A stretch of 64,000 nucleotides of DNA from Thalia democratica (GCA_965202585.1 OZ241830.1:6944001-7008000), one strand, 5' to 3'. Counted from the stretch's first letter, positions 5,050-63,276 are shown. Notes: a model not told the origin generated them from the sequence alone. Program-made: numbers and translations.

Positions 5050-5176
5050 TGTTATAACAGAAATAGAAAGAGTTCTCACTTATAATGTTGACAAAAATGA
5101 ATGGTACTGTAAAAGTAATTGTTTTACGGAATTTGAAGGAGGTTTAGTATGTCTTGCAAAGCTTTCTGTTATTTAA
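5050..5176 (+). pseudogene. Orphan 3' fragment of a CA-type Kelch gene
   Basis: Encodes ERVLTYNVDKNEWYCKSNCFTEFEGGLVCLAKLSVI-stop and is followed by the normal CA 3' flank. There is no upstream coding part. Confidence 0.9.
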
Positions 5177-25900: not shown

Positions 25901-26101
25901 AAGCTGTTAAGCAGAAATAAAAACGACCTTTGTTACAAAACAAAAACTGGACAAGACGTTAAAAGGTGTACGACTCGATAAGCGAAAGGTTTAGCTACAG
26001 TAAATATTTTGGGGTCTGTAAAGAGGAATATAAAAAGACCATAGTACAACTGATTTTTTTTTGATATTTGCCTGGGACTAACAAACACCTGCCGACCCCT
26101 G

Positions 26102-26109
26102 TTCTAGTT
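26102..26109. other. Empty (pre-insertion) site of the 698-bp MITE
   Basis: GCCGACCCCTG-TTCTAGTT-GTGTAAATAAA matches both flanks of the filled copy at 34324-34942 with a single TTCTAGTT. Confidence 0.85.
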
Positions 26110-28611: not shown

Positions 28612-28725
28612 TGTACTCGTGCAAAATTGACCATTGGTGCAAAACCGTCATCGTGCAATTTTGTTCACTCGTGCTATTTGGTAACTTCGTGCAATTTTGT
28701 CTTCGTGCAATTTAGACCCGCTCCG
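28612..28725. mobile_element. Partial copy (one end) of the 698-bp MITE, carried by segmental duplication
   Basis: Ends TTTAGACCCGCTCCG-AACTAGAA with the same flank as 9680. About 28610-29640 parallels 9530-10660. Confidence 0.8.
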
Positions 28726-32301: not shown

Positions 32302-33243
32302 ATGGTAGTTAAATTTTCATATGAAACAACACGAGTATTGTACCAAAATCGATTCTGTGAACAAGAAAACTTTGATGTTATTTTTTCTGAAAGCACTGCT
32401 GTGTTAAAACACTCTGTGGAAGGAAAAATTTTAAGATTAAGTTCACGTAACTTAGAAATAATTAAAACTATATATCATTCAAATGAACATTCATACAATG
32501 ACTTAACAATTTGTGAAAGATCCAATGTTTGGACTGTTTGCTTAAGATTAGTAGTTAAAGGCGAATCTAAAACACGATCTTCATTCAGGATTTATAGTGA
32601 TAAAACTGACCAATGGGTTAATGTAGTTCAAATACCTGATGGTAGAGAAAACTTTAGCGCTTGTTCGTTTATGAAAAACATTTATGTATTTGGTGGATAT
32701 ACTGACTCATCCCTCAAATGTTGTTATAAATATGATACAAAAAGGAGTAAGTGGATATTTATCGCCAAAATGAATAAATTTAGGCAATTTGCAGGTTGTA
32801 CAGTATTCAAAGGTAAAGTTGTCTTAACTGGTGGTTACGATGGTAAAAATGGTGTAAATTTGAGCTCAGTAGAAGCATATGATTTTTACGAGAATAAATG
32901 GGACTCTCTGCCTCGCATGATCAACAAAAGATGTCTACATGGAGCAGTTTGTATGGGCAACAAGCTGTTTGTCATTGGTGGGGCTTACAATGTTTCTTGC
33001 GAGGTTTTTGATAGCAGTTCTATGAAGTTCACTAGTATCAAGCATTTAGAGCGCAATTGTTATCAGTTTGTTTCCGCGGTCAGTTTTGGTAGTGAAATTT
33101 TAATTTTTGGTTCAGGGTTTAGAGCAGGAAAAGAAAGAATTCGCATTTATAATGTTGACAAAAATGAATGGTACTGTAAAAGTGATTGTTTTAAGCAGTT
33201 TGAAGGAGGTTTAGTATGTCTTTCAAAGCTTTTTGTTATTTAA
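32302..33243 (+). CDS. K6: Kelch-only beta-propeller protein, 313 aa (N3-CA type)
   Basis: Intact ORF. The N-terminal ~147 aa differ from K4 at only 2 positions. Confidence 0.92.
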   Translation: MVVKFSYETTRVLYQNRFCEQENFDVIFSESTAVLKHSVEGKILRLSSRNLEIIKTIYHSNEHSYNDLTICERSNVWTVCLRLVVKGESKTRSSFRIYSDKTDQWVNVVQIPDGRENFSACSFMKNIYVFGGYTDSSLKCCYKYDTKRSKWIFIAKMNKFRQFAGCTVFKGKVVLTGGYDGKNGVNLSSVEAYDFYENKWDSLPRMINKRCLHGAVCMGNKLFVIGGAYNVSCEVFDSSSMKFTSIKHLERNCYQFVSAVSFGSEILIFGSGFRAGKERIRIYNVDKNEWYCKSDCFKQFEGGLVCLSKLFVI

Positions 33244-34323
33244 CAGTTTAAAATCTCAATGGTGCCTGATATTTTTGTTAAATGTACAATGTGTTTGTTG
33301 TTGTTTTATATTGATATACTATTTAAACTTATTTTAGTTTTCAAAATTAAAAAGAATATGTTGCTGTTTGGTACTGACTTTTTTTTTGTAGTTGAACTAC
33401 TTAGTTTTCAAAGGTAACTGTGGATATTGTTGTTTTGTTTATTTTGTCTTTTCACTTCAACAATAAACAAAAAAACATAAATTTTTTAATTTTTATAATT
33501 AAAATCATTATAATTAATAAAAAGTTAAATTTTACAGATAAATGTTACTGATGAAACTAATTTGATTACTGGTGAATTCTACGTTATTAATCTTTAAAAT
33601 CTAATATAAATTTCGACAAAAAAGATTTGAAGAAAAAATTGGAAATGTGTCGATTTAAAATTATAAAATAAACAGTATAGTTTTTTTTATATTTATACTA
33701 GTAGATTTTATGAAACGAGTTAAGAGTTTATATTATCTAAAAATGTGTAACGTAAGCGTACACTGTTTATAGCTTTAGATTTAATGATAGCATATTGTAA
33801 CATCTAGCATAAAACATAAAGAGAAGATTAATGTAAAATAATTAAAGTCAAATTAATACCATTTTTATTAAAAAGTTTACAAAAAATTTGCATAAAATTA
33901 TCACAACTTTTTTTTGAATTAACTATTTAGTTCAATATCTTTGGAAATTTATTTTTAAATTACTGTAATAACGTTAATTCTTAATAAATAAAGGTGTTAT
34001 ATGTTTAAGAATTGAATATAAAATAACACAACTGTAATAACTAATTGATAAAGCAGAGAAAATTTATGTGCTACAAAAAGAAATCACTTGAAAAACAAGC
34101 TTGCGTCAATACCAATTAGTAATAAATACTTTTTCGGTTCAGATTTTATAATTTACTTTTGTATTATGTTTTTGTTTCCCAACAGGACTGGCTTAAAACT
34201 TACTAAAAGAGCTTTTTGTAATTAAATAAAGTTTTTGATAAAACTTTAATCCGTTTGCAAAGTTTGACTGTTCTTTGAAATTTGCCTGCGACTAACAAAA
34301 ACCCGTCGACCCCTGTTCTAGTT

Positions 34324-34942
34324 CGGAACGGGACTAAATTGGACGAAGACAAAATTGCACTGAGTTACTAATTTGCACGAGGGCACAAAATTGCGAAAGG
34401 GCACAAAATTGCACGATGACGGTTTTGCACCAATGGTCAATTTTGCACGAGTTACATTTTCTGACGACAGTTAAAAATACAGAAAAATTAAAAAAAAAAA
34501 TAAACAAAAAAATGAAAAATAAAATATTTATGAAAAAAAAAGAAAGACTGACCGAGGGTAAGTATTAGGGGTAACATTGATAGTAAACAACAAATAACTA
34601 ATAAAATTATTTATGATAAAAAAAATATTAAAAATTAAAAACTACCGACCGAGGGTAATGGTTAGGGGTAATAGTGGTAGTAAAAAAAAAATTAAAAAAA
34701 AAAAACAATAAAAAACTAAAATAAAAAATTTAAGTAAAAAAAAAAAAAAAAACTTACCGACAGAGGATAAGGATTAGGGGAAAAAGTGATAGAAAAAAAT
34801 ATATACATATCAAATTAATATAAAAAATTGAAAAAAACTATAACTGATTCGTGCAAAATTGTCTACTCGTGCAAAAGTATCTTCATGCAATTTTATCCCC
34901 TCGTGCAATTTTGTACCCTCGTGCAATTTAGACAGCTACCCG
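34324..34942. mobile_element. Inverted duplicate of the 698-bp MITE family element, TSD TTCTAGTT
   Basis: Same TIRs, TSD (34316-34323, 34943-34950) and flanks as the reverse complement of 8940-9720. Confidence 0.85.
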
Positions 34943-36100
34943 TTCTAGTTACGTAAATAAACAATTAGTTTAAAAAGCACAGTAGACTGCTGTATAACTG
35001 CCTAAAAGTTTCTCATTTAATAATATACTAGTGCATTTTACTTTATTATAATTCAAACAACGCAAATTACACATCAGTGTCTTTTTAATTCTTTATATTT
35101 TTAGTATAACTTTTTTACTAGACTTCGGGTTAAATTTATTTCATTAATTAAACTTTTTATTTCTAAAACAAGTTTTAATTTTTTATTTAGAATTTTTTCT
35201 TAATTAATATTTTGTTAAACCTATTTTCACGTGTTAAACCATAAGAATTTGAGCATTAGAAAAACTGTTTAATAATTAACTAACTTTGCTGTTCTTAATT
35301 TACTTTCAGTTTTAAACTTTAATAAAGTGATTGTAGAAATTAATCAGATTTAAAATTATTTAGTCAAACAATATCTTTTTTGATTGTATAGTTAAAGGTT
35401 CAAAATTAATTATTTCTACTCATATAAGCCAAAACAGTTAACTTAACTACACTGAATTTATAGAAAGCCATATATACTTCTACTTACAATAGCTATAGTT
35501 AGACCTAATAAAATAGAAAATCTAATACATCAGGAAAGGAAATCAATTGTTGTGCTTATTCATATTACAATCAATAAACATGACTATGCTACAAAAGATA
35601 TACAGCTGTCTGTTTTTAAATGTTTTAGTAAGTAAAAATACACTTAGTCAAAACAATTTGTTTAAATAAGATATTTTAATTTATATATAATAATTAGGTC
35701 AACTTATTTACAATAAATTTAGAGATACTCACAGTTGAACGTTCGAAACAATGAATTAAATTAACAATTTCGTTTACTTCTTAGTCATACATTATGCCAA
35801 GGCTGTACGACATCGTAATACGTATTAACATATGATAGACAACAATTAAAAAGTTTTCTTTTTTTAAAGCAGAATTAATATTGTTACACTAAACTAATTT
35901 AAAATCTTATAAATCAATTAAGCAATTGCAAAACAAGTTATTTAGTCAGTTGAAAATTTGTTGAGAGTGTTTCAATTCATATAAGCCAAAACTATTTACA
36001 CTTAACTATATTACATTTATAAAGATTCAAATATCACTAGTAGCATAAAAGTATACAACTCTTCGTAAAATAAATAAAGTTTTTAATTGAATAAATCTAC
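34943..36100 (+). promoter_or_regulatory. Orphan Kelch upstream region (gene deleted)
   Basis: Collinear with the K10/K2 upstream region and the K6 proximal region (ACTAGTAGCATAAAAGTATA). It breaks roughly 55 nt before the expected ATG and joins sequence homologous to about 15370 onward. Confidence 0.75.
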
Positions 36101-36327
36101 ATTTCAAAAGATTTCAAAAAATTTCACCAGAAGTACTCCAGATGAACTATTTCAATAACATGTTATTAATAAATACAAATAATTTTGTTTTTCATTTTTA
36201 ATTGTTTATTATTTGTATATCATAGTAAAATTTATTTTTTAGACTCGATGACTTAGAGTTTCTTTTGTAGACATAAGATCAAACTTTTTGAGCATTTTTT
36301 TATCGTTAGATAAACAGTACTTCAGAA

Positions 36328-36720
36328 CAGGGCTTCCCAAACTTTTATTCGTAAGGCTCTTAAAAAGAAATAAAAGAATCTATGGCCCTCTCCGACAATA
36401 TTTTTCAAAAAGACTACCATTAATTATACCTAAGACTTGCTCTTCATCATCAACTCCAGAATAACTAGTAAAAGTTTCAAGTAATGGCCTTGTGGCTTCC
36501 TCTTTTACAGCTTTCCTAAATTTCAAAAATTTTACCTAGTAGCTAGCACAATTTGTAAAACTACCCTTAAATACGCCAGATATACTTTCTTTTCTTTATT
36601 GCTCTTTATCATCAACTTAACAGTATCTGTGTAAGTTTTTCGAATTAGTTGTGGCCTCGTGGTCCCTGATTGGCCCACTTGTAGCTTAAGACCCCTTAAA
36701 TTTCTGAAATGGCATACAAG
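36328..36720. mobile_element. Degenerate hAT-like element end
   Basis: CAGGGCTTCCCAAACT TIR-like start with GGCCC motifs. A decayed homolog lies near 15580-15790. No second TIR or TSD found, and the right boundary is approximate. Confidence 0.4.
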
Positions 36721-40315: not shown

Positions 40316-43015
40316 GCTTTTTTGTGTCAAATCGAAATTTTACTTCTTAATATGTTAAAATTGTTAAAGATTCCAGATTTTTTAGGTTTTTTTTTTGCCT
40401 AAACTGTCAAATTCCAGGTTTTTCCAGGTTTCTAGGTAAATAAGCAACCCTGTATAGTTTTATTTCTTAGTCTAACTTAGTGACTTTTCAAAAAGCATTT
40501 GGAAATAAAAGTATACAGGGTTGCCAGTTTACCTAGAAATTTAATAATATATAACATAGATTTTTACAAACACTTTATGATCCCAAATAGCATTTTGTCA
40601 GGTTATAAAATGGTGAGAGGGATTCCGATCGTCTATGATCTATGTAAATGTTAAATAAAAAAAACATATAAACGAAAATATGTAATTTACTTAAAAGTAG
40701 GAGTTATAAGTACCTGATTTTTTTCTCTTTATTTTACATAAACAAAATAAACTTTTTTATGTTTAAGTTTTACCTCAGGGTCAAATATTTAATAGCAAGC
40801 TAAAATTAGTAAAATAGCAATATAAAAAGTAAAAATTTTATGACAGCCCAAAACTTTAAAATCGCCCCCTTTTCGCCCCCTCACTAGTTATCGCCCGACC
40901 TTTCGCCCCCTTACTAATTATCGCCCCCCGACTTACTAAAATCGCCCCCAGGGGGGCGATATCGCCCACTTTGGGAAACCCTGGTGTAGAGGCTTCACGT
41001 TACCGACCTTTAGTTTAAGGAATTTAAAAGCTTTTTTTAAACTTAAAAATAATAATTTTTAAGTATTGTATTTTATAATGTTTCTTCACTTTCTTACGAA
41101 AATTTAAAGTTAACAAATTAAATGTAAAAATCCTGCGCGGTAAAACTTACAAATAAGTAATATTATAAAAAGGTATAACAGAAATCATAAAACTTTAGAC
41201 ATATATGTATTAGACATTTATCTAAATTTATAATGCGTATTATTAATAACAACTATAGAAAATACTCTGTTTTTGAACAAAAACAATTGTGCTATCCCAC
41301 TGAAAAAAGTCTAGACACGCCATGGTACAAACATATTAATTTCGGAAATTTTCTTAGTTCAAATTTTTCGTACTACATCTATACAAAATAACCGCTCATA
41401 GTTGATTTAAGAAACGGTTTTTGATTCTTTTAAAATATAAGATTTTTACTGCTAAATCGTTTACCTTTTTCGCTACTTTATTTGAGCAGCGTTCAAAATT
41501 GTAATGGTAAAAACTAGTATTTTTATAGAAAGTTTTAGTTTTTTAACTACTATGTCTTGTTTTTTAGTAAGTAGATCAATAAAACGATTTTATATTAAAT
41601 ACACTTTACAAAAACTTCAAAAGTGATAAGTCCTTTACTAATTAGATCTTAAAAAACACAGCTTTTTTTTAGTGTAGAAAAGGATACTTTTTTAAATAGT
41701 ATTTGTTGTACTTATAAACGTATCCAAATTTAATTTTGTTAGACCAGTCTTCTTATTAGTTATTCATTAAAAATTCATTACTATTACATTTAAATAAAAT
41801 GCTTGAATAAAACTTCAATGAAACATTCTCTAAAATATTTTGTTGGTATGACTGTAAAGAATGAAATTGTGATAACAGTTAAAAAAAATTAAATACAGAT
41901 AGAAAAAAAAGTCTTTTTCTAAGAATTAGTTCTATAAATATATTTTTAAGAAATACTATTCAGCACAATTTCACATAAAACTTCAGTTATGTTGTAGTGT
42001 TAAAATTTTATAGTGTTTTTGACGAACTAGCTTTTACACAATGAGCTTACTAAATTAATTTTTTTTTATAGTTGATTAAATTTTCACAATAGTTTAAGCA
42101 CTACAGTTGTAAACTCATCAAAAATAAGTTAAATTATTATTGTTGGCCTCCATATTATTGCGAAATTTGTTTTTAACTCACAGTAGAATTTTTAGTAAAA
42201 TACAAAATGAAGCTTTATTTTTACAACTTCGGCAACCATAATAATAATTTTTAAGATAATCTTCACTACTACACAATTGTTTATATCAAGCCAAACTAAG
42301 TATTTCTACATTTAACTAAAAAGATATGTAGTTTATATCTTTAATTTAGATATCAGTTTTAAATCTTAAAAAAGTATCAAAAAAGTCTTTAAACAAGTAA
42401 AATACCATTTTTGCTTAGCAAATGCTAACCATTAACATTTAATCTAAAGCGTAATACATTTTTTGCTTAAAAGTTAATTAATAAACATATAATTAAATAA
42501 TTTATAAAATTAAAGTAATAGAACTTTTAATCTCTGGTAAAACATGCCAAAAATTCATAGTTTTTTTTATTTTCTTTTGAGTCTGTCGAACTAAATAAGA
42601 TTATATATCACAATGTAATAAATAAACGTTTCATAAATATTTTAATATTTAATGTTTAATACTTTATAAAAACAACTTAAGCATAAAAATTCTTTTTAGA
42701 TGTATGTAAATGGAAAAAAATCTAAAACGCAGTTAAAAAATGCTATTAATTTTACTTTAGTTGTTTTATTTTAATTTTTTTTGTTTTATGTTAGATGTTA
42801 CAATATAATATCATTTTCGAATTTAAATCAATATCCACAATTTCAATAGAAAACTAAGTATTTAAACTACGAAAAAAAAAGTCAGTACCAAACAGCAACA
42901 TATTTTTATAAACTTTGAAAACTAAAACAAGTTTAAATTAAATAAAGTTATCAAACAACGTAATAGTCATTGTACATTTAATAAAATTACTAGGTAACAT
43001 GGAAATTTTAAACTG

Positions 43016-43187
43016 TTAAATAACAGAAAGCTTTGCAAGACATACTAAACCTCCTTCGAATTGCTTAAAACGATTACTTTTGACACCAATCTATAATAAA
43101 AACACCCTCTCCACCAATGACAAACAGCTTGTTGCCCATACAAACAGCTCCATGTAGAAATATTTTGTTGATCATGCGAGGCAGAAA
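43016..43187 (-). pseudogene. K7: internally deleted CA-type Kelch remnant
   Basis: About 43107-43187 matches the LPRMIN..LHGAVCMGNKLFVIGGE segment and 43016-43080 the KSNRFKQFEGGLVCLAKLSVI-stop segment. The intervening blade-6 part is missing, and the CA 3' flank follows in inverted orientation. Confidence 0.85.
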
Positions 43188-45968: not shown

Positions 45969-46910
45969 ATGGCAGTTAGTTTTTCATATGAAACAACACG
46001 AATTTTGTACCAGAACAGATTTTGTGAACAAGAAAACTTTGATGTTATCATTTCTGGAAGCACTAGTATGATAGAACGAGAAATGTTATGGCTAAACTCG
46101 CGTAGCTTTAATAAAATTAAAACAATATACTATTCAAAGACATATTCAGACAGTGACAGAACGATTTGTGAAAGATTTAATGTTTGGACTGTTTGCTAAA
46201 GATTATATGAGAAAGGCGAATCTAAAATACAACCTTCATTTAGGATTTATATTAATAAATCTCACAATTGGTTTAATATAGTAGAAACACCTGAAGTTAG
46301 AAAAATGTTTAGCGCTTGTTCATTTATGAAAAATATTTATGTCTTTGGTGGAATTACTGAATAAGGAGCTATAAAAAGATGTTATAAATATGATACAAAA
46401 AGGAGTAAGTGGATATTTATAGCAAGTATGAAGGAATGTAGGCAATTTGCAGGTTGTACAGTATTCGAAGGTAAAATTGTCTTGACTGGTGGTTACGACG
46501 GTCAAAAAGTTGATAATGATGTAAGTTTGAGCTCAGTAGAGGCATATGATTGTTACGAGAATGAATGGGACTTTCTGCCTCGCATGATCAACAAAAAATG
46601 TCTACATGGAGCAGTTTGTATGGGCAACAAGCTGTTTGTCATTGGTGGAGAGAAAAATTCTACTTGCGAGGTATTTGATAGCAGTTCCATGAAGTTCACT
46701 AGTATCAAGCATTTAAAGCGCGATTGTTATTATTCTGTTTCCGCGGTCAGTGTTGGTGGCGAAATTTTAATTTTTGGTTCAGGGTATATAGCAGGAAAAG
46801 AAAGAGTTCGCACTTATAATGTTGACAAAAATGAATGGTACTGTAAAAGTAATAGTTTTAAGCAATTTGAAAGAGGTTTAGTATGTCTTTCAAAACTTTC
46901 TGTTATTTAA
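45969..46910 (+). pseudogene. K8: Kelch-only gene (N1-CA type) with two in-frame TAA stops
   Basis: Frame is preserved over 942 nt, with TAA at 46197-46199 (Ser/Leu in paralogs) and 46362-46364 (Gln in K5 and K11). The conserved upstream CAG is changed to AAG. Confidence 0.9.
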
Positions 46911-47338
46911 CAGTTTAAAATATCCATGTTACCTGGTAATTTCATTAAATGTACAGTAAGTATTACGTTATTTGATAATGATATTTTATTTAAACTTGTT
47001 TTAGTTTACCAAATTTAAAAAAATATGTTGCTGTTTGGTTCTGACTTTATTTTTGTAGTTTAAATATCAATTTTTTATTGAAATAGTGGATAGTGTTATT
47101 TTGTTTTTTTTTGTCTTTTTACTTTAACAATAAACAAAAATCTCGAGTTTGTTAGCTTATTTAATTGAAATCTTGTTATAACTAATCAAAAAATAGTTAT
47201 TTTTGATATTTTGAGTAGTATAAGTGTTACGGTTAAAAATAGTTTGATTATCGGTGAATTCTACGTTATTTATCTTTAAAATCTAGCAAATTGCAAATGT
47301 GTCTATTAAAAACACATTCATAATATACACAGTATGGT

Positions 47339-47360
47339 TGTATATATATATATATATATA
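47339..47360. repeat. (TA)n microsatellite in the CA-type 3' flank
   Basis: Homologous tracts near 5632-5655 and 63737-63751. Confidence 0.8.
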
Positions 47361-48488
47361 CACTTGTAGTTTTTTTGTGTGACGTAAGCGTACACTGTTT
47401 ATAGTATTTAAAATTTTATGATAGCATTTTGTAACATATTATATAAAACATAAAGAAAAAACTAAATTAAAATAATTAAAGTCAAGTTAATAGCATTTCT
47501 AACTGTTTTTTAGATTTTTTTCATTTACATCTAAAAATAATTTTTATGGTAAGTTGTTTTTATTAAGTAAATAACACAATATATTAAAATATTTTAAAAT
47601 TTTTTTTGTTACACATTGTCTTTTATATCCTTATTTAGTTCGGCAGACTCAAAATGTACTAAATGAAAATAAAAATTACATGTGTTTTTGACATATCTAC
47701 CAGAGATTAAAAGTTCTAATATTTTAATTTAATAAATTAATATATAGAATATATAATATGCGTAAACTACATACAATAAAAAAGTACAATAAAAATAGCT
47801 AATAATTCAAACAGCCTTGATAAAAGCTTTATTAAAGTTTTATAATGGTTTCAAATAAAACAGATGAAGTGTTGCAAAAATTATAATAATTTAGTTAAAT
47901 TTATAGTTAAAAAATTTGCCCTTACTTTTAAGTAAGTATTTAAGATGCTGTACTGATTAAATTAATTTTCTCAATTGTTTTTCTAGGGAAGTTTCAAAAT
48001 TTATGTTTACCTTAAATTAATAAAACACATTTTAATTTTCTTAATCAGTTACAATAAGTTTTAGATGAAGAAGTTTATCTTTACCTATAAGTTGTAAAAA
48101 GTTGTTCTACGTTTTATCTTTAAAATCATACATTGGGTATTAATGGTTAAAAATCCAAAGAACAACTAATTAGTTATAGCTAGTTATACAAAACAACATA
48201 TGAACGTTATGCTATAAGATAAACACACTAACTTTAATAACATTTTAATAAAAACTGTTATAAGTAAACTATTAACAAAGTATAAACATGTACTTGTTCT
48301 TATTTAATTTTTTAAATTAAAAAAAACTGAAAAGAAAAGAAAAGAAATAAAAAGAAAAAGAACACAACAACAATATGCATTTTAAACTAAGTTTGTAAAT
48401 TATAAAAAGTTTAAACGAAAATCAGTACCTTAAAACACATTTTTAACATTTTGTATAAGCTAATAGACAACAAAAGTGTTTTTTACTG

Positions 48489-49415
48489 TTAAATAACAGA
48501 GAGTTTTGAAAGACACTCAGTATATCCAAAATAAAAATAACTAATACCTTCAGATTTCCATTCATTTTTGTCAACATTATAAGTAAAAATTCTTTCTACT
48601 CCTACTTTTTCACCTGAACAAAATGTTAAAATTTTAACACAAATACAGACTGCAGAAACATATTTGAAACAACTTTGATCTAAATGCTTGATACTAGTGA
48701 ACTTCATGGAACTGCTATCAAATACCTCGCAAGTAGCATTTTCCTCTCCACCAATGACAAACAGCTTGTTGCCCATACAAACTGCTCCATGTCGACATCT
48801 TTTGTTTATCATGCGAGGCAGAAAGTCCCATTTATTCTCGTAACAATCATATGCCTCTACTGAGCTCAAACTTATATCATTATCACCGTCGTAACCACCA
48901 GTCAAGACTATTTTACCTTTGAATACTGTACAACCTGCAAATTGCCTATATCTATTCATTTTAGTTATAACTTTCCACTTGCTCCTTTTTGTATCATATT
49001 TATAACAACATTTGAAGAAACAGTTAGTAAATCCACCAAAGACATAAATGTTTTTCATAAATGAACAAGCGCTAAAGTTACCTCTATTATCAGGTGTTTG
49101 AACTACATTAATCCATTGGGCAGTTTTATCAATATAAATCCTGAATGAAGATCGTGTTTCAGATACGCCTATAGCTTCTAATCTTGAGCAAACAGTCCAA
49201 ACATTGGATCTTTCACAAATCGTTATGTCACTGTCCGAATGTGTCTTTGAATTGTATATTGTTTCAGTTTTATCAAAGTTACGCGAGTTTAACCTTAAAC
49301 TTTCTCGTTCTAACACATCAGTGCTTCCAGAAATAATAACATCAAAGTTTTCTTGTTCACAAAATCTATTCTGGTACAAAATTTGTGTTGTTTTAGATGA
49401 AGAACTAACTGCCAT
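48489..49415 (-). CDS. K9: Kelch-only protein, 308 aa (N1-CB chimera)
   Basis: Intact ORF with a K3-like N-terminus and upstream region and a K2-like C-terminus and downstream region. Confidence 0.92.
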   Translation of the reverse strand: MAVSSSSKTTQILYQNRFCEQENFDVIISGSTDVLERESLRLNSRNFDKTETIYNSKTHSDSDITICERSNVWTVCSRLEAIGVSETRSSFRIYIDKTAQWINVVQTPDNRGNFSACSFMKNIYVFGGFTNCFFKCCYKYDTKRSKWKVITKMNRYRQFAGCTVFKGKIVLTGGYDGDNDISLSSVEAYDCYENKWDFLPRMINKRCRHGAVCMGNKLFVIGGEENATCEVFDSSSMKFTSIKHLDQSCFKYVSAVCICVKILTFCSGEKVGVERIFTYNVDKNEWKSEGISYFYFGYTECLSKLSVI

Positions 49416-49884
49416 TTTGAACCTGCAACTTTGGTAATTTGAATTTACAGTAACTTGTGTGGTTACGAAATATACGATTTTGTAGAACTATTCAATCAAA
49501 AACTTTAACTAATTATTTATAAGAATTGTATACTTTTATGTTACTAGTTATATTTGATTTTTTATAGATAAAATACTTAGGTGCAAATAGGTTTGGCAAT
49601 ATGAGTTTTAAAAATTGAATCTTAATTTGAACACACTCATCAGATTTTTAAACTGACTAATTTACTTGTAATGTTGTTGATGTTTTGCAATTGCTTAATT
49701 AATTTTTAAAATCTTAAACTAGTTTTGTTAAAAATACTAATTATATTTTTAATTAAATTTTGAAAACTTTTAATATAAGTTTTTAAGTATTGTCTATTAT
49801 ATGTTAATATGTTTTACGCCGTTTTATAGTCTTAGCATTGTTTATTATCAAGCAGTAGTTTAATTCATTGTTTTGAACGTTTCA

Positions 49885-50132
49885 CTTTTTTTCACATGGC
49901 CCCTTTTAAAGAAGTTAAAAAGCCATGGCCCCCTTCAAAAAGATAACTCATAAACTATCATAAAAAACACCTAACACTTTTTTTTTGCTCTTCATCTGCA
50001 TTTCAAAAATATCTAGTGTAAATTTCAAGTTATGACCTCATGGCCCCACTTTTACCCCTTTGCTGCTCGTAGCCCCCTAAGTATCTGTCATGGCCCCCAA
50101 GGGGGCCACTTGGCCCACTTTGGAAAACCCTG
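49885..50132 (-). mobile_element. Truncated hAT-type MITE, inverted duplicate of 11984-12232
   Basis: Ends TTTGGAAAACCCTG and has the same truncation junction with the Kelch upstream region. Confidence 0.8.
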
Positions 50133-50338
50133 CTTTATATAGATAAAATTTGAACTAATTATAGTTAATTTTTTTTTGTTAAAGTTAGAAAATTCTTATT
50201 TATTAACTAAAGAGTAGGTAAGATGTTTGTACCAAGGGCTTGTTAGAATTTTTTTAGTGTAATAGCTCAATTGTTTTTGTTCAAAAATAGAGTATTTTCT
50301 GTAGTTGCTTTTAATAACAACATTAGAAATTTATATAT

Positions 50339-50692
50339 AATAAATAATAATAAACTAGCAAAAATTCATATAACTTCAGTGACTCACTGAAGTTATATGA
50401 ATTTTTGCTAGTTTATTGTCTGTTGGTAGATTAGTTTTTGCACAAGCCGTTTTGTACGATTTTTGATAGTTTCAAAATTACGTCATAATCTATTTATGCA
50501 AAAATTTTCTTACCTTCATTAGTGATTTTGTTTTGTGCTTTATTTTAAACTTGTTTTGAAGCTGATGAGTGAGTAATCACGAAACTCGAGTTCTTTGAGT
50601 TTTGCATCTTTAAATAAACCTTTTTATTAATGAAGCCCTCAAGGTGGGCTCAGTGTGAAAAATTTAATTTATTAAGTTAAATAACTTAATTC
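50339..50692 (+). mobile_element. Penelope-like element terminal (pLTR-type) fragment inserted in a (TA)n tract
   Basis: Absent from the paralogous site near 11775. It contains a hammerhead core and a perfect 5' inverted repeat, both typical of PLE ends. Assignment is by structure only. Confidence 0.65.
50555..50599 (+). ncRNA. Minimal type I hammerhead ribozyme motif
   Basis: TTTGAAG-CTGATGA-GTGA(GTAA)TCAC-GAA-ACTCGAGT-T-CTTTGAG: intact CUGAUGA/GAAA core, 4-bp stem II, palindromic stem III (ACTCGAGT), GUU cleavage triplet and a wobble-rich stem I. Confidence 0.72.
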
Positions 50693-52344
50693 TATATATA
50701 TATATGTCTAATATATAACTTTCTAAAGTTTTTTGATTTCTGTAATACCTTTTTATAGTATTAACTAGTTAATTAGCTTACCGTGAAAATTTTCTATACT
50801 TTAAATTATTGTAAGACTATTAACTCTAAAACTAAAAACAAAACAAAAAATTTAAACAGAGTTAATAGTAAATGATATTCATAGTTTTAACTCATTTCAT
50901 TCAAAATCTAACAACAGATTAGTATCTGACAATTATGACTGTTTCAGAAATAAACACATAAAAGCTTAGTTACTCACTCTACCTTGAGACTTCCATACCT
51001 ATAATCTCTCAAGCCAAAATATAAACAACAAGTAAATTGTTTTTGTTTGTTTAACAGAACTATCAAACAATATAAATAATAAGAGCCATGTAATTGTTTA
51101 CCAGTAGGTAGGAAGTTATAAAAATATAGAAAAATTAAATTTAAGGTGTGTTCTTGTACATTAAAATTATTCACGCTGTTTTATATAAATTAAAAGATAG
51201 TTTACACCAGCTTTTTTTAATACAGATTAAAGATTGGTTTTTTAATCTAAACATACGTTTTAAGTTAGAAAGTTTATTGTATCAAACTACTTATATAACT
51301 TTTTTATTGTATTTTAATTTTGTTTTTTAGTTTTCTAGAAAAAAACTTTATATAAAAATAACTTTTAGAGCTGTCTTTGAAAAGAGTTATTAAATTTGAA
51401 ATGTCAAAGTTGAATAGTTAGCTATAATATTATTAAAATAATGCTTATTTCAAAGAAAATCCTAATATTGAGGTGTTCAGAAATTTTGGATCTAAACGGT
51501 AATGTGGATAAATTTATTCATTTTTATAGCGTAGAAGCCAAAGACAACACTGAAAAATAGGAGCTGTAAATATTAACGTAATATATTTTTAATTTGTATG
51601 CTAATTCATTCAATTACAGATAAACTTTTTTTTTCTTGTTATTTTAGAACCAAAGTTGTTGTAGGCTGTTATTAATAATTTACAGTTTTTTAGTTTGTAT
51701 CGTTGCTAGTTTCTTGATGCATTAAAATAAACTAAATGTGCTATTAGAAGAGTGCCTTTTAAAACATTTAACAAATTGTATCTCTTGTAAAGTTAAAATA
51801 TTTGAAAACACATGTAATCTTATTATTTTCATTTAATAAAATTTGAGTAAGTGCAAACTCAGAATAGATTAAAAAGACAATGTAACAAATATAAACTTAC
51901 CCAGTACTTTAGTGCATTTGTTAGTAATTACTTTACTACCTTTTTTATGAGCCCAACTCAGACATGTACTTTTTTTATCTAAATATATATGGGAAAGAAA
52001 TATATACAGTACTTTATATAAGTAACTTAAATTTTAGACACCAACTTGTTTTATAAAAAATAAAATTGTAAATGTAAAATAGTTTTTATTTTTATTACAT
52101 ATTAGGCGATATAATATTATTACAAAAACCTTGATTTAAAAAACAGTGTACGCTTACATTAAAAGCTAACTATATATTATTACTTCTTAACTAGGTTTAT
52201 AAATCTTATAAATATAAAAGAATTTTTAAAAACCGATTTTATTTTGTTTCAATCTTTAACAGGAACTTTCGCAGTTTTTGGTTTTGTTTAATTTGTATTT
52301 AGCTAAAAGTTATGCTAGTATTTAAAAATTTACAAACTAGAAAT

Positions 52345-52842
52345 TAAATAAATTAATAAAAAATAAACAGAAAAATGAAAAATAAAATATTTATGAAAAA
52401 AAAAAGAAAGACTGATCGAGGGTAAGTATTAGGGGTAACATTGATAGTAAAGAACAAATAATAAAAAAAATTATTTATGATAAAAAACATATTAAAAATT
52501 AAAAGCTACCGACTGAGGGTAATGGTTAGGGGTAATAGTGGTAGTAAAAAAAAAGTTTTAAAAAAATTAAAAAAACTAAAACAAAAAATATAAGTTGAAA
52601 AAAAAACAAAAAAAAAAACTTACCGACCGAGGGTAAGGGTTAGGGGAAAAAGTGATAGAAAAAAATATATACATATAAAATTAATATAAAAACTTGAAAA
52701 AAACTATAACTAACTCGTGCAAAATTGTCTACTCGTGCAAAAGTATCTTCATGCAATTTTAAGCACCCGTGCCAAAGTATCTTCATGCAATTTCAGGAAC
52801 TCGTGCAATTTTGTACCCTTGTGCAATTTAGACAGCTACCCG
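52345..52842. mobile_element. Partial copy of the 698-bp MITE (one end deleted)
   Basis: Ends GACAGCTACCCG-TTCTAGTT as at 34942. The other end was removed by a deletion of roughly 600 bp relative to 9480-10095. Confidence 0.8.
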
Positions 52843-54072
52843 TTCTAGTTACGTAAATAAACAATTAGTTTAAAAAGCACAGTAGACTGCTGTATAACTG
52901 CCTAAAAGTTTCTCATTTAATAATATACTAGTGCATTTTACTTTATTATAATTCAAACAACGCAAATTACACATCAGTGTCTTTTTAATTCTTTATATTT
53001 TTAGTATAACTTTTTTATTAGACTTAAGTTCAGGTTAAATTTATTTCAAATATTAGACTTTTTATTTCTAAAACAAGTTTTATTTTTTTATGTAGAATTT
53101 TTTTTAATTAATATTTTGTTAAACCTATTTTCACGTGTTAAACCATAAGAATTTCAGCATTAGAAAAACTGTTTAATAATAAACTAACTTTGTTGTTCTT
53201 AACTTACTTTCAGTTTTAAACTTTAATAAAGTGATTGTAGAAGTTAATCAGATTTCAAATTAATTAGTCAAACAATATCTTTTTTGATTGTATAGTTAAA
53301 GGTTCAAATTAATTATTTCTACTCATATAAGCCAAAACAGTTAACTTAACTACACTGAATTTATAGACAGCCATATATACTTCTACTTACAATAGCTATA
53401 GTTAGATATAATGAAATAGAAAATCTAATACAACAGGAAAGGAAATCAATTGTTTTGCTTATTCATATTACAATCAATAAACATAACTATGCTAAAAAGA
53501 TATACAGCTGTCTGTTTATAAATGTTTTAGTAAGTAAAAATACACTTAGTCAAAACAATTTGTTTAACTAAGAAATTTTAATTTATATATGACAATTAGG
53601 TCAACTTAATTACATTAAAGTTAAAGATACTCACAGTTGAACGTTCGAAACGATGAATTAAATTAACAATTTTGTTTACTTCTTAGTAATACATTATGCT
53701 AAGGCTGTACAACATCGTAATACGTGTTAACATATAATAGACAACAATTAAAAACTTTTCTTTTTTTTCAAAGCAGATTTAATATTGTTATATTAAACTA
53801 ATATAAAGTTTTATAAATCAATTAAGCAATTGAAAAACAAGTGATTTAGTCTGTTGAAAATTTGTTGAGAGTGTTTAAATTCATATAAACAGAACTATTT
53901 AGACTTAACTACATTACATTTATAAAGAAACAAAAAACACAAGTAACATAAAATTATATAATTTTAGCTAAAATAAATGAATAAAGTTATTGGTTGAATC
54001 ATTTTACAAATCGAATATAAAAAACTACAAAAGTTATTGTAAATTCAAGTATAACAAAGTTACAGGTTTGAA

Positions 54073-55032
54073 ATGGCAGTTAATTTTTCATCTAAAACAA
54101 CACGAATTTTGTACCAGAATAGATTTTGTGGACAAGAAAACTTTGATGTTATTTTTTCTGGAAGCACTGCTGTGTTAAAACACTCTGAGGAACGAAAAAT
54201 ATTAAGAATAAGCTCGCGTAATTTAGAAAAAATTGAAACTATATATCATTCAAAGAAACGTTCATACAGTGACACAACAATTTGTGAAAGATCCAATGTT
54301 TGGGTTGTATGCTCCAGATTACCCGTTCGCAGCAAAACTCATCTAAAAGATAATTACAAGCTTGTTGATTCGTTCAGGATTTATCTTGATAAAACTGACC
54401 AATGGATTAACGTAATTCAAACACCTGATGATAGAAGAAGCTTTAGCGCTTGTTCGTTTATGAAAAACATTTATGTCTTTGGTGGATTTACTGACTCACC
54501 ACTTAAACGTTGTTATAAATATGATACAAAAAGGAGTAAGTGGAAATATATAGCCAAAATGAATAAATATAGACATAATGCAGCTTGTACAGTATTCAAA
54601 GGTAAAATTGTCTTGACTGGTGGTTACGATGGTAAAAATAAAGTAGATTTAAACTCAGTAGAGGCACATGATTGTTACGAGAATAAATGGGATTTTCTGC
54701 CTCGCATGATCAACAAAAGATGTCTACATGGAGCAGTTTGTATGGGCAACAAGCTGTTTGTCATTGGTGGAGAGGAAAATGCTACTTGCGAGGTATTTGA
54801 TAGCAGTTCCATAAAGTTCACTAGTATCAAGCAGTTAGATCGCGATTGTTATTATTCTGTTTCCGCGGTCAGTGTTGGTGGTAAAATTTTGATTTTTGGT
54901 TCAGGGTTTAGAGTAGGAGAAGAAAGAATTCGTTCTTATAATGTTGACAAAAATGAATGGTACTATAAAAGTAATTGTTTTACGGAATTCGAAGGAGGTT
55001 TAGTATGTCTTGCAAAGCTTTCTGTTATTTAA
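54073..55032 (+). CDS. K10: Kelch-only protein, 319 aa (N2-CA chimera)
   Basis: Intact ORF with a K2/K5-like N-terminus and K2-like upstream region, and a CA-type C-terminus. Confidence 0.92.
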   Translation: MAVNFSSKTTRILYQNRFCGQENFDVIFSGSTAVLKHSEERKILRISSRNLEKIETIYHSKKRSYSDTTICERSNVWVVCSRLPVRSKTHLKDNYKLVDSFRIYLDKTDQWINVIQTPDDRRSFSACSFMKNIYVFGGFTDSPLKRCYKYDTKRSKWKYIAKMNKYRHNAACTVFKGKIVLTGGYDGKNKVDLNSVEAHDCYENKWDFLPRMINKRCLHGAVCMGNKLFVIGGEENATCEVFDSSSIKFTSIKQLDRDCYYSVSAVSVGGKILIFGSGFRVGEERIRSYNVDKNEWYYKSNCFTEFEGGLVCLAKLSVI

Positions 55033-56004
55033 CAGTTTGAAATCTTAATGTTGCCTGATATTTTTATTAAATATACAATTAATATGTTGTTGTTTGATAT
55101 TGATATACTATTTAAACTCTTTTTAGTTTTCAAATTAAAAAAAAATTGTTGCTGTTTGGTTATTACTATATATTTTGTAGTTGAAATACTTAGTTTTCAA
55201 TAGAAATTGTGGATATTGTTGTTTTGTTTTTTTGTCTTTTCTCTTCAACATAAAAAAAAATCGAATTTGTTAAATTATATAATTAAATCTCGTCATAATT
55301 AATCAAAAAATAGTTTTTTTTTGATATCTTGAGTAGTACAAGTGTTACGGATAAAATTAATTTGATCGTCGGTGAATTCTACGTTATTTATCTTTAAAAT
55401 CTAGCATAAATTTCAACGAAAACAATTTGATGAAAAAAGCTGCTAATTCCTTTATTTAAAATGATAGAATAAACAGTATAGTTTTTTTTTAATATAGTTA
55501 TACTAGTAGTTTTTATGAAACATTATATAAACACTATTTATATTATCTAAAAATGTGTAACGTAAGCGTACGCTGTTTATTGCATTTAAAATTTAATGAT
55601 AGCATTTTGTAACATATTATATAAAACATATAGAAAAAATTTAATTAAAATAATTAAAGTCAAATCAATAGCATTTAGTATAACTGTTTTTTACAAATTT
55701 TTCCATTTACATTTTTAAAGAACATAACTTAATTAGGTAACCTGAAACTCAGATTAAAAGTCATAATGTTCTAAAAAAAATCAGTGCACACTAAGCTAGA
55801 CCGGTGGTTTTAAGTTTAAAAATCTGTGGCATTAAACTAAAATAAAATTTTCTGTGGACCACAAGCTCAAAACTCATCAAAAACTTTTTGACTATTTTAA
55901 ACATTTTTCTTTCAAGTTTAGTGTAAGTTTTTAATTAAATATATCTATTCAGTAAACTTTAAAACAAAAGAAACTACTTTAACAAGAAAACAGTTTATAA
56001 CAGA

Positions 56005-56620
56005 TAACTAAAAGTATCGCACACCACGCGCAAAGCGCGCTTTTGTGCTAGCAAATAAATAATGTTATAAGTAAAAATATTACAAAAAAGTATAAGTTTT
56101 TTAGTTTTGTACTTCGTTTAAAATATTATTACAAAATTGTTAAAATTTAAAAAAACAGTTGTTTAAACTAAGCATAAGAACAGAAACTATAAAAAGAAGA
56201 ATAAATCTTAATATATCTTATCATTTTGTTATATATGAGCTTCATACAAAATGAACTACTAACAGTTTACAATAAATAACTAAGAGTATCGCACACCGCG
56301 CGCGCTTTTGTGCTAGCCGAATAGAGGAAACAAATAATATTAAAGTAAGTATATTACAAAAAGCTAGAAATTTTTTTAAATTTTGAATATTCACGAAAAT
56401 TCTTCAAGTTTTAAAAAACTGCTGTTTAAATTAAGCATTAAAACAGGATAGTTTTATAAAAACTGAAAAACAGTATTTTAACGTTACATGAATCTAAATT
56501 CTTTAACTGAATTCTTACCTCAGAAAGTTCCGCTTTCTTTCGGCTTTGCTTCTCAAAAAAAGCACAAAAGCGCGCTTTACGCGCAATTGTGCGATTTTGC
56601 CTTAAGCTTCGCTTTGCATT
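56005..56620. repeat. Second copy of the GCGC-hairpin/CTAG region, with an inverted third motif
   Basis: ATCGCAC..GCGCG..GCGCGCTTTTGTGCTAGC near 56015-56050 and 56287-56320, and a reverse-oriented copy near 56560-56605. Confidence 0.45.
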
Positions 56621-57822
56621 TACTGCTGTTTTTGTCTTTGCTTATCATCCCATTCTCCCCATAGATTATATCAAATATGTATTTCAAACTTTTATATAAT
56701 TTCTTACAAATTCATGTTACGTCACTAACTCTTTCAGATGTCCATTTTTTGTCAGCACAAAATCGTTCAAAAAAGTTAGCAAAAAATTTGCATAAAACTA
56801 TCATAACTTTTTTTTGACTTAACTATTTAGTTCAATATCTTTGGAACTTTATTTTTAAATTACTTTAATAACGTTAATTGTTAATAGATAAAAGTGTTAT
56901 ACGTTTAAGAATTAAATAAAAAATAACACAACTGTGATAACTAATATTTAAAGCAGAGAAAATTTATGTGCTACAAGAAGAAATCACTTGAAAAACAAGC
57001 TTGTGTCCATCCCAATTAGTTATAAATACTTTTTCGGTTCAGATTTTATTATTTACTTTTGTATTATGTTTTTGTTTACCAACAGGACTGGCTTAAAACT
57101 TACTAAAACTTTGAAAGAGCTTTTTGTAATTAAAAAAAGCGTTTGATAAAACTTTAATCCGTTTGCAAAGTTTGAATGTTAAGAAAAATTATGTCTTAAA
57201 GATTTTGAACACAATAAAGTTGTATTGTGTTCAAAATTACAGTAATTGTTTAAACTAGTTCAAGCATTGCAAAAGACTAAAACCATTTAACTATGCATTC
57301 AACGATCGGCTTTGCCGAGTGATAAGTCCTACTTACCAATTGACTAATATTTCTCTCTACAATTCTTCAGTTTTTATTGATATAATATAAATCAATTTTG
57401 TAAAGTTTGAACGTTATTACTCTTTTTATTAACTCTTTCTCTTTTCATAGTTGTCGCGTTTGACTAATAATATGGTAAGTGTGAATTTTTAAATATTTTT
57501 TACTGTACTAATTCCAATGAAAGTTTAATAGCATATATTCCTTACTGTAATAGCGGTTGTTGCTAACTTTATTAAGTTTGTTTTTTCATTAAGTATTAAT
57601 CGAAACTTTTATTACCTAATTTAAAAACTACTTTATTCGATTTATTAAACAACCTTTTAAAACTGACTATCTTTTTATAACTGCTTAATACATAACTTTA
57701 ACACTTACAATCGTTTTGACATGACAAAGTTAAAAAAAAGTTAATAATAAAAAAAAAAACTAAAAACAGGTGTTCTCTTTTTAGAAAGGTTATATAAAAA
57801 AAATTATCTAGACAGTGAATAA

Positions 57823-58216
57823 TTATCTTGGCGAATTGTTCTTTTTACTCTTATTTTTGTCAACTTTGCGTTTTTTGTCAACTTTGTCGAAGTGATGTAC
57901 TGTGCGCACCACATCACTGGGAAATTTTTCCAAATCAACAACCGCGAATTTCCTGAATGAATCCCTTGAACCTCTTGATCTGATCTGACGCTTTCCGCTT
58001 TGACATCGTTGAACTCCGTCTCGACGTGCTTTGTGACGTAATAGCAGTCGGGAGGTCAGTTTGCCGGTCGACCAGATCGTCGGCATACCTCCCCGTCGCC
58101 CAATGTGCGCGATATCCTTCCTGTCCATGGGGAACTCCCCCGTGTAGTTGCACTTCTCCTTGTCCTGTATTTCGAGCACCTGGTCCGCACCGCCTCCTGC
58201 CTGGCGTACGGGACGA
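57823..58216 (-). other. GC-rich foreign-looking fragment, possibly a decayed viral or Polinton-like D5 primase-helicase piece
   Basis: Sharp GC jump against the flanks. GC3-rich stretches in shifting frames read MDRKDIAHI..STGKL / PDCYYVTKHVETEFNDVK / DQIKRFKGFIQEI, loosely like the D5_N motif. Not verified by search. Confidence 0.35.
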
Positions 58217-62343: not shown

Positions 62344-63276
62344 ATGGCTGTTAGTTTTTCATCTAAAACAACACAAATTTTGTACCAGAATAGATTTTGT
62401 GAACAAGAAAACTTTGATGTTATTATTTCTGGAATCACTGATGTGTTAGAACGAGAAAGTTTAAGGTTAAACTTGCGTAAGTTTGATAAAACTGAAACAA
62501 TATACAATTCAAAGACACATTCGGAAAGTGACATAACGATTTGTGAAAGATCCAATGTTTGGACTGTTTGCTCAAGATTAGATGTTAAAGGCGTATCTGA
62601 AACACGACCCTCTTTCAGGATTCATATTGATAAAACTGACCAATGGGTTAATGTAGTTCAAACACATGATGGTAGAGGTAACTTTAGCGCTTGTTCATTT
62701 ATGAAAAACATTTATGTCTTTGGTGGATATTTTGAACAAGAAGCTATAAAAAGTTGTTATAAATATGATACAAAAAGGAGTAAGTGGAATTTTATAGCAA
62801 TTATGAATGAATGGAGGCAAGTTGCAGCTTGTACAGTATTCGAAGGTAAAATTGTCTTGACTGGTGGTTATGACGGTGAAAATAGAGTATATTTAAACTC
62901 AGTAGAGGCATATGATTGTTACGAGAATAAATGGAACTCTCTGCCTCGCATGATCAACAAAAGATGTCGACATGGAGCAGTTTGTATGGGCAACAAGCTG
63001 TTTGTCATTGGTGGAAAGAAAAATGCTACTTGCGAGGTATTTGATAGCAGTTCCATGAAGTTCACTAGTATCAAGCATTTAGAGCGCGATTGTTATTATT
63101 CTGTTTCCGCGGTCAGTGTTGGTGGCAAAATTTTGATTTTTGGTTCAGGGTATATAGCAGGAAAAGAAAGAGTTCGCACTTATAATGCTGATAAAAATGA
63201 ATGGTACTGTAAAAGTAATTGTTTTACGGAATTCGAAGTAGGTTTAGTATGTCTTGCAAAGCTTTCTGTTATTTAA
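62344..63276 (+). CDS. K11: Kelch-only beta-propeller protein, 310 aa (N1-CA type)
   Basis: Intact ORF, close to K3 in the N-terminal half. Confidence 0.92.
   Translation: MAVSFSSKTTQILYQNRFCEQENFDVIISGITDVLERESLRLNLRKFDKTETIYNSKTHSESDITICERSNVWTVCSRLDVKGVSETRPSFRIHIDKTDQWVNVVQTHDGRGNFSACSFMKNIYVFGGYFEQEAIKSCYKYDTKRSKWNFIAIMNEWRQVAACTVFEGKIVLTGGYDGENRVYLNSVEAYDCYENKWNSLPRMINKRCRHGAVCMGNKLFVIGGKKNATCEVFDSSSMKFTSIKHLERDCYYSVSAVSVGGKILIFGSGYIAGKERVRTYNADKNEWYCKSNCFTEFEVGLVCLAKLSVI

Follow-up and report, generated by a model that had tools for sequence, protein, structure and literature searches.

A historical inversion between inverted Kelch paralogs probably gave rise to a chimeric propeller gene in Thalia democratica

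The window analysed here, a 64,000-nucleotide stretch of the Thalia democratica genome (GCA_965202585.1 OZ241830.1:6944001-7008000; C6:6944001-7008000 in the following), carries ten intronless genes or pseudogenes of ~0.93 kb and two fragments, all belonging to one family of Kelch proteins. Two of the genes, K9 (48489-49415, minus strand) and K10 (54073-55032, plus strand), stand head to head and have intact open reading frames (ORFs) for Kelch-only proteins of 308 and 319 amino acids, respectively. Another head-to-head pair lies further left and consists of K2 (6766-7725, minus strand, intact, 319 amino acids) and K3 (12703-13635, plus strand, intact, 310 amino acids); we refer to the region of K2 and K3 as locus A and to that of K9 and K10 as locus B. 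K9 combines the 5' part of a K3-type gene with the 3' part of a K2-type gene, and the spacer next to it is reversed relative to the spacer of locus A. A historical inversion by homologous recombination between inverted paralogs explains both features, and we put the probability of this explanation at about 0.75.

K9 is a chimera of two Kelch lineages

Each gene of the family can be divided into a 5' module, consisting of the upstream region and the N-terminal coding part, and a 3' module, consisting of the C-terminal coding part and the downstream region. The former occurs in three types (N1, N2 and N3) and the latter in two (CA and CB). We compared 24 copies, 20 from the cluster to which the window belongs and four from other chromosomes; 188 kb of the cluster were used as continuous sequence and the loci R04-R24 as pieces of 3.9 kb. 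The pure types are separated by 69 class-diagnostic columns of the coding sequence (CDS), with K3, K11, Ka, Kd, R12, K1 and R04 representing type A and K2, K5, Ke, R21 and R24 representing type B. In these columns K2 is B throughout (class N2-CB), K3 is A throughout (class N1-CA), and K9 shows 45 A-type sites followed by B-type sites (class N1-CB).

The tree inferred from the segment between -470 and +330 places K9 as the sister of K3 (support 100/100), and forcing K9 to group with K2 costs 165 log-likelihood units and is rejected by the approximately unbiased (AU) test (p = 1.5e-107). The tree inferred from the last 200 nt of the gene and 600 nt downstream unites K9 with K2 (100/99), and here it is the grouping of K9 with K3 that is rejected (AU p = 6e-6). 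In a sliding-window comparison, the identity of K9 to K3 is 93-100% over a stretch that begins ~1.2 kb upstream and reaches CDS nt ~380; its identity to K2 is 89-97% from CDS nt ~730 through 2 kb downstream. The change falls between CDS nt ~391 (position ~49025), up to which K9 is K3-like, and nt ~726 (~48690), from which it is K2-like; nt ~394-700 resemble neither K2 nor K3 and find their best matches in K8, K5, K6 and K10. K9 is a clean chimera, with the promoter side and the first ~390 nt from the K3 lineage and the last ~200 nt and the downstream region from the K2 lineage, and this result is robust. The first-pass annotation of the window had already assigned K9 to N1-CB, an assignment that the diagnostic columns and the AU tests now extend to the level of sister lineages.

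The same annotation had located both breakpoints inside the conserved coding region for blades 3-5 of the propeller, and this agrees with our intervals and with an AlphaFold2 (AF2) model of K9. The model (predicted local distance difference test score, pLDDT, 79.9; predicted template modelling score, pTM, 0.82) contains 24 strands, which fits a six-blade propeller. Residues 1 to ~125 are modelled as three strands of the closing blade and blade 2, residues ~125-245 as blades 3-5, which are highly conserved and have pLDDT above 90, and residues ~245-308 as blade 6 and the final closing strand. Judging from the spacing in the strand list, the last strand (298-306) may pack with the N-terminal strands (24-56). 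The interval in K9 (~48690-49025) and its counterpart in K10, which is N2-like up to CDS nt ~473 (~54545) and CA-like from nt ~762 (~54834), both map to the region coding for blades 3-5.

The spacer of locus B is reversed

Paralogs on opposite strands always match each other in inverted orientation, so that the non-genic sequence is the informative part of a comparison between the two loci. In locus A the modules follow in the order flank, CB, N2, U2, repeat element, U1, N1, CA, and in locus B in the order flank, CB, N1, U1, repeat element, U2, N2, CA, where U1 stands for the upstream region of K3 and K9 and U2 for that of K2 and K10. A self-BLAST of the window aligns 5053-8156 of locus A directly with 46787-49857 of locus B, and 6835-13645 with 54960-48479 as a single reverse-complement chain. 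The spacer of locus A (7726-12702) is composed of U2 (7726-9476), the repeat element (~9561-10674) and U1 (10675-12702), an order opposite to that in locus B. There, U1 (49416-51770, minus strand) is colinear in reverse with the region upstream of K3 (12702-10675); a truncated copy of the repeat element in mid-spacer (51771-52343, minus strand) is inverted with respect to 10103-10674 (91.4% identity); and U2 (52350-54072, plus strand) is colinear in reverse with the region upstream of K2 (9476-7726), in the orientation predicted by an inversion. Locus B has no equivalent of positions 9477-10102 of locus A. The central reversal between 7726-12702 and 49416-54072, together with the inverted truncated element that marks it, had been proposed in the first-pass annotation and is borne out by the self-BLAST and by the following scans.

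The uniqueness of the modules was assessed by scanning 200-bp pieces against the 188 kb of the cluster and by a reciprocal scan. The sole partner of positions 49800-51800 in these 188 kb is 12317-10646 of locus A, in inverted orientation and with 87-98% identity, and the reciprocal scan is concordant. U1 is mostly unique to loci A and B, with the same dispersed repeats embedded in both, and has no match in the right-hand loci of the cluster. Further copies of the spacer repeat element are found at 28608-29664 and 25647-26109. Within the left flank of locus B, the unique part (47800-48400) has its best partner at 6093-6676 of locus A, in direct orientation and with 87-95% identity (three matches per 200-bp window).

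As to the outer flanks, which had been described as direct repeats on both sides, the description stands for the left one. The left flank of locus A (5053-6765), which starts with a 37-codon 3' fragment of a Kelch gene (5066-5176, plus strand), is the direct, locus-specific counterpart of the left flank of locus B (46787-48488; 92.4% identity), the latter comprising the 3' end of K8 and the convergent intergenic region downstream of K9. It does not stand for the right one: the similarity between 15820-17230 and 55990-57390 is direct, but it is built of a multi-copy repeat (19-35 matches per 200 bp) and of an element X (56600-57400) that occurs in at least four places, including 16600-17250, 33870-34272 and a site ~97 kb left of the window, and it is therefore uninformative on inversion.

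Divergence between the two loci, expressed as Kimura two-parameter distance (K2P), is uneven. It amounts to 0.04-0.09 from the left flank to the repeat element (left flank 0.081, CB 0.079, N1 0.038, U1 0.055-0.059, repeat element 0.092) and to 0.10-0.34 from U2 to the right flank (U2 0.21, N2 0.099, CA 0.124, DA 0.34, right flank 0.16). Only in the left two thirds of the region do loci A and B qualify as two copies of a single unit; on the K10 side, which belongs to other lineages and is 10-34% diverged, they do not.

Locus B also contains a specific 361-bp insertion (50332-50692) that resembles a miniature inverted-repeat transposable element, opens with a ~60-nt perfect hairpin and lies in TA-rich surroundings. 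The insertion is polymorphic in the sequenced sample, with contigs of the runs X1 and X2 joining position 50331 to 50693. The insertion-free allele shows 0+4 mismatches to locus B as opposed to 7+9 to locus A; being nearer to B, it indicates that B is a locus of its own and not an allele of A. Very high-copy dispersed repeats are present at 49967-50163, 50361-50754 and 52725-52921, where the summed unitig depth reaches 5e4-3e5, compared with ~100-300 nearby; copies of the first of them are found on contigs C2, C5, C8, C9 and C36.

K10 and related upstream modules

K10 has 47 B-type diagnostic sites followed by A-type sites, i.e. class N2-CA. The two genes of locus B are thus reciprocal at the level of class (A to B in K9, B to A in K10), whereas at the level of lineage the chimerism holds for K9 and K10 groups elsewhere. 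Its 3' end is sister to R12/R04 (100/100), which are situated in the cluster to the right of it; the 5' end falls with K5, Ke and R19 (94/98); and the upstream region agrees at 90-100% with an orphan module (34536-35895), as against a K2P of 0.21 to the upstream region of K2. K10 as the exact reciprocal of K9 is rejected by AU tests. Of the class assignments made in the first-pass annotation, those of K2, K3 and K10 are all upheld by the diagnostic columns, but K10 is N2-CA by class only and has no specific kinship to K2 or K3.

The orphan module belongs to what we call orphan C (34472-36108, plus strand), a U2-type upstream module whose gene has been deleted and the nearest relative of the K10 upstream region. 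Orphan C and locus A both retain the junction between U2 and the repeat element (9360-9733 in A, 34599-34271 in C). The orphan C region (34472-36513) is directly followed by sequence 82-88% similar to positions 15364-15788, which lie 1.7-2.1 kb downstream of K3. The arrangement points to a former U2-type unit that had a K3-like downstream region and suffered a deletion. Another N2-CA gene, Kb (C6:6848878), was considered as the true reciprocal of K9 and rejected: it is 144 kb away, and its 3' end and downstream region group with Ka/K6 and not with K3. Its class switch falls in columns 348-364, the same interval as in K9, where two diagnostic sites separate Kb from K10.

Mosaicism across the cluster

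The genes of the cluster represent two old types on opposite strands. Among its 20 full-length genes, the 3' class follows the strand (11/11 CA on plus, 9/9 CB on minus; Fisher p = 6e-6), and the 5' types are distributed as eight plus and one minus for N1, two plus and six minus for N2, and one plus and two minus for N3. With the two 3' types located on opposite strands, a 5' module can come to stand with the other 3' type only by exchange between inverted copies. The distribution implies that 5' modules would have switched strands at least three times over evolutionary time (in K9, in K10/Kb, and in K6 relative to K4/R17), and each such switch carries at least 1.2 kb of upstream sequence. The idea put forward at first sight of the sequence, that inversion or exchange between inverted paralogs re-pairs propeller halves, gains support from these switches.

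K4 (18983-19920, minus strand, frameshifted) and K6 (32302-33243, plus strand) have the same third type of 5' module and share a 124-nt identical run, with 3' modules of classes CB and CA, respectively; their similarity of ~88% extends over the 5' part of the gene and 1.2 kb upstream (18736-21137 in K4, 33496-31081 in K6). They represent a second case of 5'-module exchange between inverted copies. The class switch of K4, K6 and R17 is situated at columns ~135-232; the mosaic of R19 runs B-A-B, and Kb passes from B to A. A GENECONV-style permutation analysis found unexpectedly long identical runs in many pairs, including all three head-to-head pairs (K2/K3, K9/K10 and R17/R12), and gene conversion is pervasive in the family. 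The ratio of nonsynonymous to synonymous substitution rates is high (0.5-0.8), and 10/24 copies are pseudogenes with stops or frameshifts, both of which fit a rapidly turning-over recognition family. A degraded remnant on the minus strand (42120-43187) has a downstream region of the CA/DA type, 85% identical to that of K3 (13570-14533).

Mechanism of the exchange and alternative explanations

K9 and K10 have in common a 188-nt tract with six mismatches (97% identity) and an 87-nt perfect run (permutation p = 0.001), which lies at 48677-48864 in K9 (minus strand, CDS nt 552-739) and at 54654-54841 in K10 (plus strand, CDS nt 582-769). The class switch points of both genes are within or adjoining this tract. 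Its position is that predicted for a crossover accompanied by conversion, and it is likely the crossover or conversion zone. K2 and K3, too, are homogenised in a mid-gene tract, with a 73-nt identical run (permutation p < 0.0005). In locus B, K3-like sequence starts in mid-gene, covers 2.4 kb of U1 and the remnant of the repeat element, and ends at 52343, beside the start of U2 (52350), a length of at least 3.3 kb. A conversion tract needs upstream homology in which to end, and none exists beyond ~470 bp, so a crossover between the inverted genes is the simpler explanation; a K3-like tract that does not stop upstream before the partner gene is reached is the hallmark of a crossover. We therefore infer that the event was a crossover, i.e. 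an inversion, and not a long conversion. K9, not K2/K3, is probably the derived form.

The event would have started from a duplicate of a head-to-head pair of the K2/K3 type. The two inverted gene bodies would have undergone homologous recombination within the chromosome, in the coding region for blades 3-5. This would have flipped the 5' halves of both genes together with their promoter regions and the repeat element lying in between, leaving the 3' halves and the outer flanks unmoved. K9, a K3-type 5' half on a K2-type 3' half, may be the surviving clean product. The K10 position has the expected class architecture, and gene conversion or unequal crossover with other paralogs would later have overwritten or replaced its sequence; such secondary modification of K10 is plausible given the rest of the family, though it is an added assumption. 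The breakpoints in mid-gene homology make homologous recombination, proposed from the outset as the default mechanism, the best explanation of K9 and the flipped spacer. These events belong to the germline, and the divergence of the loci, 4-9% on the K9 side and 10-34% on the K10 side, shows that they are old.

Several points weigh against an inversion of this kind. AU tests reject the grouping of K10 with K3 at the 3' end (p = 8e-7) and, marginally, with K2 at the 5' end (p = 0.046). For U2, DA and the right flank, divergence between the loci is 2-4 times that of the K9 side, and this extra divergence means that at least one further event must be assumed. The ancestral arrangement is judged by class frequencies alone, eight N1-CA and six N2-CB genes compared with one N1-CB. 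The remnant at 43107-43187 (minus strand) is the only CA-type 3' end on that strand, so that the strand rule is not absolute, and the comparison covers only 188 kb of the cluster and 3.9-kb pieces of the rest.

The first-pass annotation had also drawn an analogy to bacterial shufflons and invertible hsdS loci, and as a mechanism this analogy is not supported: we found no recombinase and no sites, divergence of at least 4-9%, a single arrangement, and a K10 that is not reciprocal at the sequence level. In the window itself the absence of a recombinase, noted earlier, is confirmed by an ORF and Pfam scan, as all ORFs of at least 100 amino acids are Kelch genes except one without a Pfam match. 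The exception (57823-58179, minus strand) has a GTG start and encodes a basic protein of 118 amino acids. Genome-wide searches for Phage_integrase (PF00589) and Resolvase (PF00239) gave no match, while the positive controls did; spliced or degenerate genes could escape such searches. No dedicated short recombination sites were found, the sole inverted homology at the breakpoints being the gene bodies, that is, a coding tract conserved across the family. The assembly contains neither an alternative arrangement nor a haplotig of locus B; after the self-match, the next matches to 47800-50300 are K3 (91%, inverted) and K2 (83%, direct). Public reads were consulted as Logan unitigs covering 47800-53700; these are at most 460 nt long, shorter than needed to span the ~350-bp breakpoint zone or to show a strand-changing joint. 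None of their best-supported joints changes strand, and unitigs from two studies cover B-specific sequence. Programmed or somatic switching is thus unsupported, and we see no evidence of action within an individual's lifetime.

It is conceivable that no inversion took place and that the 5' half of K9 with its upstream region was copied from the K3 lineage into a K2-type gene by a long non-crossover event, either ectopic gene conversion or replication template switching. K10 with U2 would then always have been a separate N2-CA unit like Kb, and the reversed module order of the spacer would be partly coincidental. The derivation of both K10 halves from other lineages speaks for this possibility, as do the existence of other N2-CA genes with U2 upstream (Kb, and orphan C with its remaining upstream part), the jump in divergence from 0.09 to 0.21 at the boundary of the repeat element and U2, and the rampant gene conversion in the family. 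We nevertheless deem it unlikely, because the K3-like tract would have to run through unique sequence and the element right up to U2 with no homology to end the conversion. Moreover, U2, repeat element and U1 form the same module in A and B in terms of order and relative orientations, so that copying requires a chance match in both module type and orientation. The U2-element junction common to A and orphan C further indicates that the junction in B arose when an inherited spacer lost internal sequence, and does not mark the edge of an inserted patch.

The head-to-head pairs might be flipping still, as a population polymorphism or somatically, and so diversify the propellers in the manner of a shufflon. 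Yeast (PMC9731477) and humans (PMC3961182) provide documented cases in which inverted paralogs re-invert recurrently, and the homogenised mid-gene tracts in 3/3 head-to-head pairs, like the repeated strand changes of 5' modules, would be in keeping with it. The segments beside the breakpoints, however, are 4-9% diverged from their counterparts, so the present state is old. A common tract of only 188 nt at 97% identity, with no more than 87 nt of it perfect, is a poor substrate for frequent homologous recombination in view of minimal homology lengths. Together with the lack of a recombinase in the window ORFs and the genome-wide profile searches and the single arrangement in the assembly, this makes ongoing flipping very improbable; were it true, each pair could yield up to four propeller combinations and would constitute a recombinase-free eukaryotic analogue of a shufflon for substrate recognition. 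We give least credence of all to an assembly artefact, or to A and B being diverged alleles placed in tandem. A 49.4-kb block adjoining on the left exists in two tandem copies that differ by one mismatch, which may point to mis-assembly or a very recent duplication. Loci A and B, by contrast, lie 41.7 kb apart with five other distinct paralogs between them and differ by 4-34% and several indels. K9 is an intact ORF with its own substitutions, and short-read contigs from two studies cover locus B, including the B-specific allele without the 361-bp insertion, which is closer to B. Structure and divergence make an allelic relationship of A and B very unlikely.

The Kelch-only family and the surroundings of the two loci

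Pfam searches recognise Kelch_1 in K2, K3, K9 and K10 with three matched repeats each (E-values 5e-28 to 3e-27; 3e-27 in K9), along with Kelch_6 and Kelch_KLHDC2_KLHL20_DRC7. No BTB or BACK domain was detected by Pfam in these four proteins, and their architecture is therefore not that of KLHL proteins; BACK (PF07707) occurs only in distant relatives of 430-490 amino acids with 30-35% identity. The cluster spans ~260 kb (~C6:6.83-7.09 Mb) of an AT-rich genome of 802 Mb (the window has 25% G+C) and comprises ~35 intronless Kelch-only copies of ~310 amino acids. A first look at relatives of the K3 protein across the genome returned more than 5000 candidate matches, thousands of them more distant, and the Kelch-only family is exceptionally expanded in this genome. 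Big arrays of Kelch-only genes with ~40% identity are located on C1 (13.5-15 and 18.7-22.2 Mb) and C5 (77.3-79.2 Mb).

Outside this genome, a homolog search found the closest relatives, with 62-67% identity, in ENA/TARA marine metagenome contigs, which suggests that the Kelch-only family belongs to a marine planktonic animal lineage. A relative of 313 amino acids, 66% identical to K9, is encoded on 5-kb contigs in ERR1726819 (Logan) and in ERZ27291330 and ERZ28656194, the last of which has TARA-named scaffolds. A search of the ESM Atlas yielded generic KLHL propellers only, a literature search on this Kelch-only family returned nothing relevant, and none of the RNA sequencing runs searched for K9 contains it.

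The remaining family members in the window are K1 (2628-3555, plus strand, frameshifted), K5 (22017-22934, minus strand), K8 (45969-46910, plus strand, a pseudogene with stops) and K11 (62344-63276, plus strand), besides the degraded remnant at 43107-43187. The two copies of the tandem duplication on the left correspond to C6:6849302-6898684 and C6:6898688-6948070, the second reaching into the window (1-4070). The duplicated block is bounded on the left within Kb (nt ~425) and on the right 515 bp downstream of K1 (window position 4070), and it is a segmental duplication of very recent date or else an artefact of the assembly.

Comparison with known recombination systems

Inversions through non-allelic homologous recombination (NAHR) are documented between inverted gene/paralog or gene/pseudogene pairs such as human IDS/IDS2, F8 int22h and SORD/SORD2P (PMC12632684), and inverted repeats are known to mediate polymorphic inversions in human genomes (PMC3961182). 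In these cases, as in K9/K10, the breakpoints lie in homologous copies of opposite orientation and the DNA between them is flipped. General homologous recombination, often with a conversion tract, turns the copies into reciprocal chimeras, a state that K9/K10 show at the level of class. K9/K10 likewise display an inverted tract of high identity at both breakpoints, a reversed spacer and a direct left flank. Unlike in the human cases, both Kelch partners are intact and apparently functional, and the product is a new intact gene instead of a disrupted disease allele. The Kelch event is also old and was followed by further exchanges, and its reciprocal was not kept at the sequence level.

Another parallel is the flip/flop region of Saccharomyces chromosome XIV, which is bounded by inverted paralogs of the Centroid family (PMC9731477). 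There, too, fast-evolving and duplicating paralogs serve as an inverted repeat, are homogenised by conversion and sustain an inversion that recurs over evolution. The yeast repeats are ~4 kb long and almost identical, and the inversion is re-created and polymorphic in every species (PMC9731477), whereas the Kelch partners are ~80% identical except for the 188-nt tract, and the flipped part consists of the 5-kb spacer and gene halves.

Bacterial shufflons (R64 pilV with Rci; PMC11852207) and invertible hsdS loci resemble the Kelch case in that inversion breakpoints within coding sequence re-pair a fixed part with alternative parts and so alter a binding protein. A shufflon, however, employs a dedicated tyrosine recombinase and short sfx sites, is reversible within clones, and swaps 3' (C-terminal) segments onto one 5' end. 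In the Kelch cluster neither recombinase nor sites were found, the 5' halves move together with their promoters, and the state looks fixed and old.

Birth-and-death evolution combined with ectopic gene conversion is characteristic of plant NLR clusters, KIR/MHC and F-box families. The Kelch cluster is similar to such recognition families in its tandem and inverted duplicates, many pseudogenes, mosaics, high substitution-rate ratios, and variable surface loops on a conserved scaffold. It differs from them in that its genes encode a propeller of Kelch repeats only, without BTB/BACK or F-box domains, and in that the tie between 3' class and strand makes inversions readable.

Implications

The present finding adds a further case of a known process, located in a tandem family that evolves rapidly, and reveals no new mechanism. 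It provides a clean, sequence-resolved case in which recombination between opposite-strand paralogs re-pairs N-terminal blades, along with their promoter, and C-terminal blades. Because the 3' class tracks the strand in this cluster, inversions can be distinguished from other exchanges, and the cluster offers a convenient natural data set for studying how modules evolve in a Kelch family that changes fast and is very large, thousands of relatives being present in this genome.

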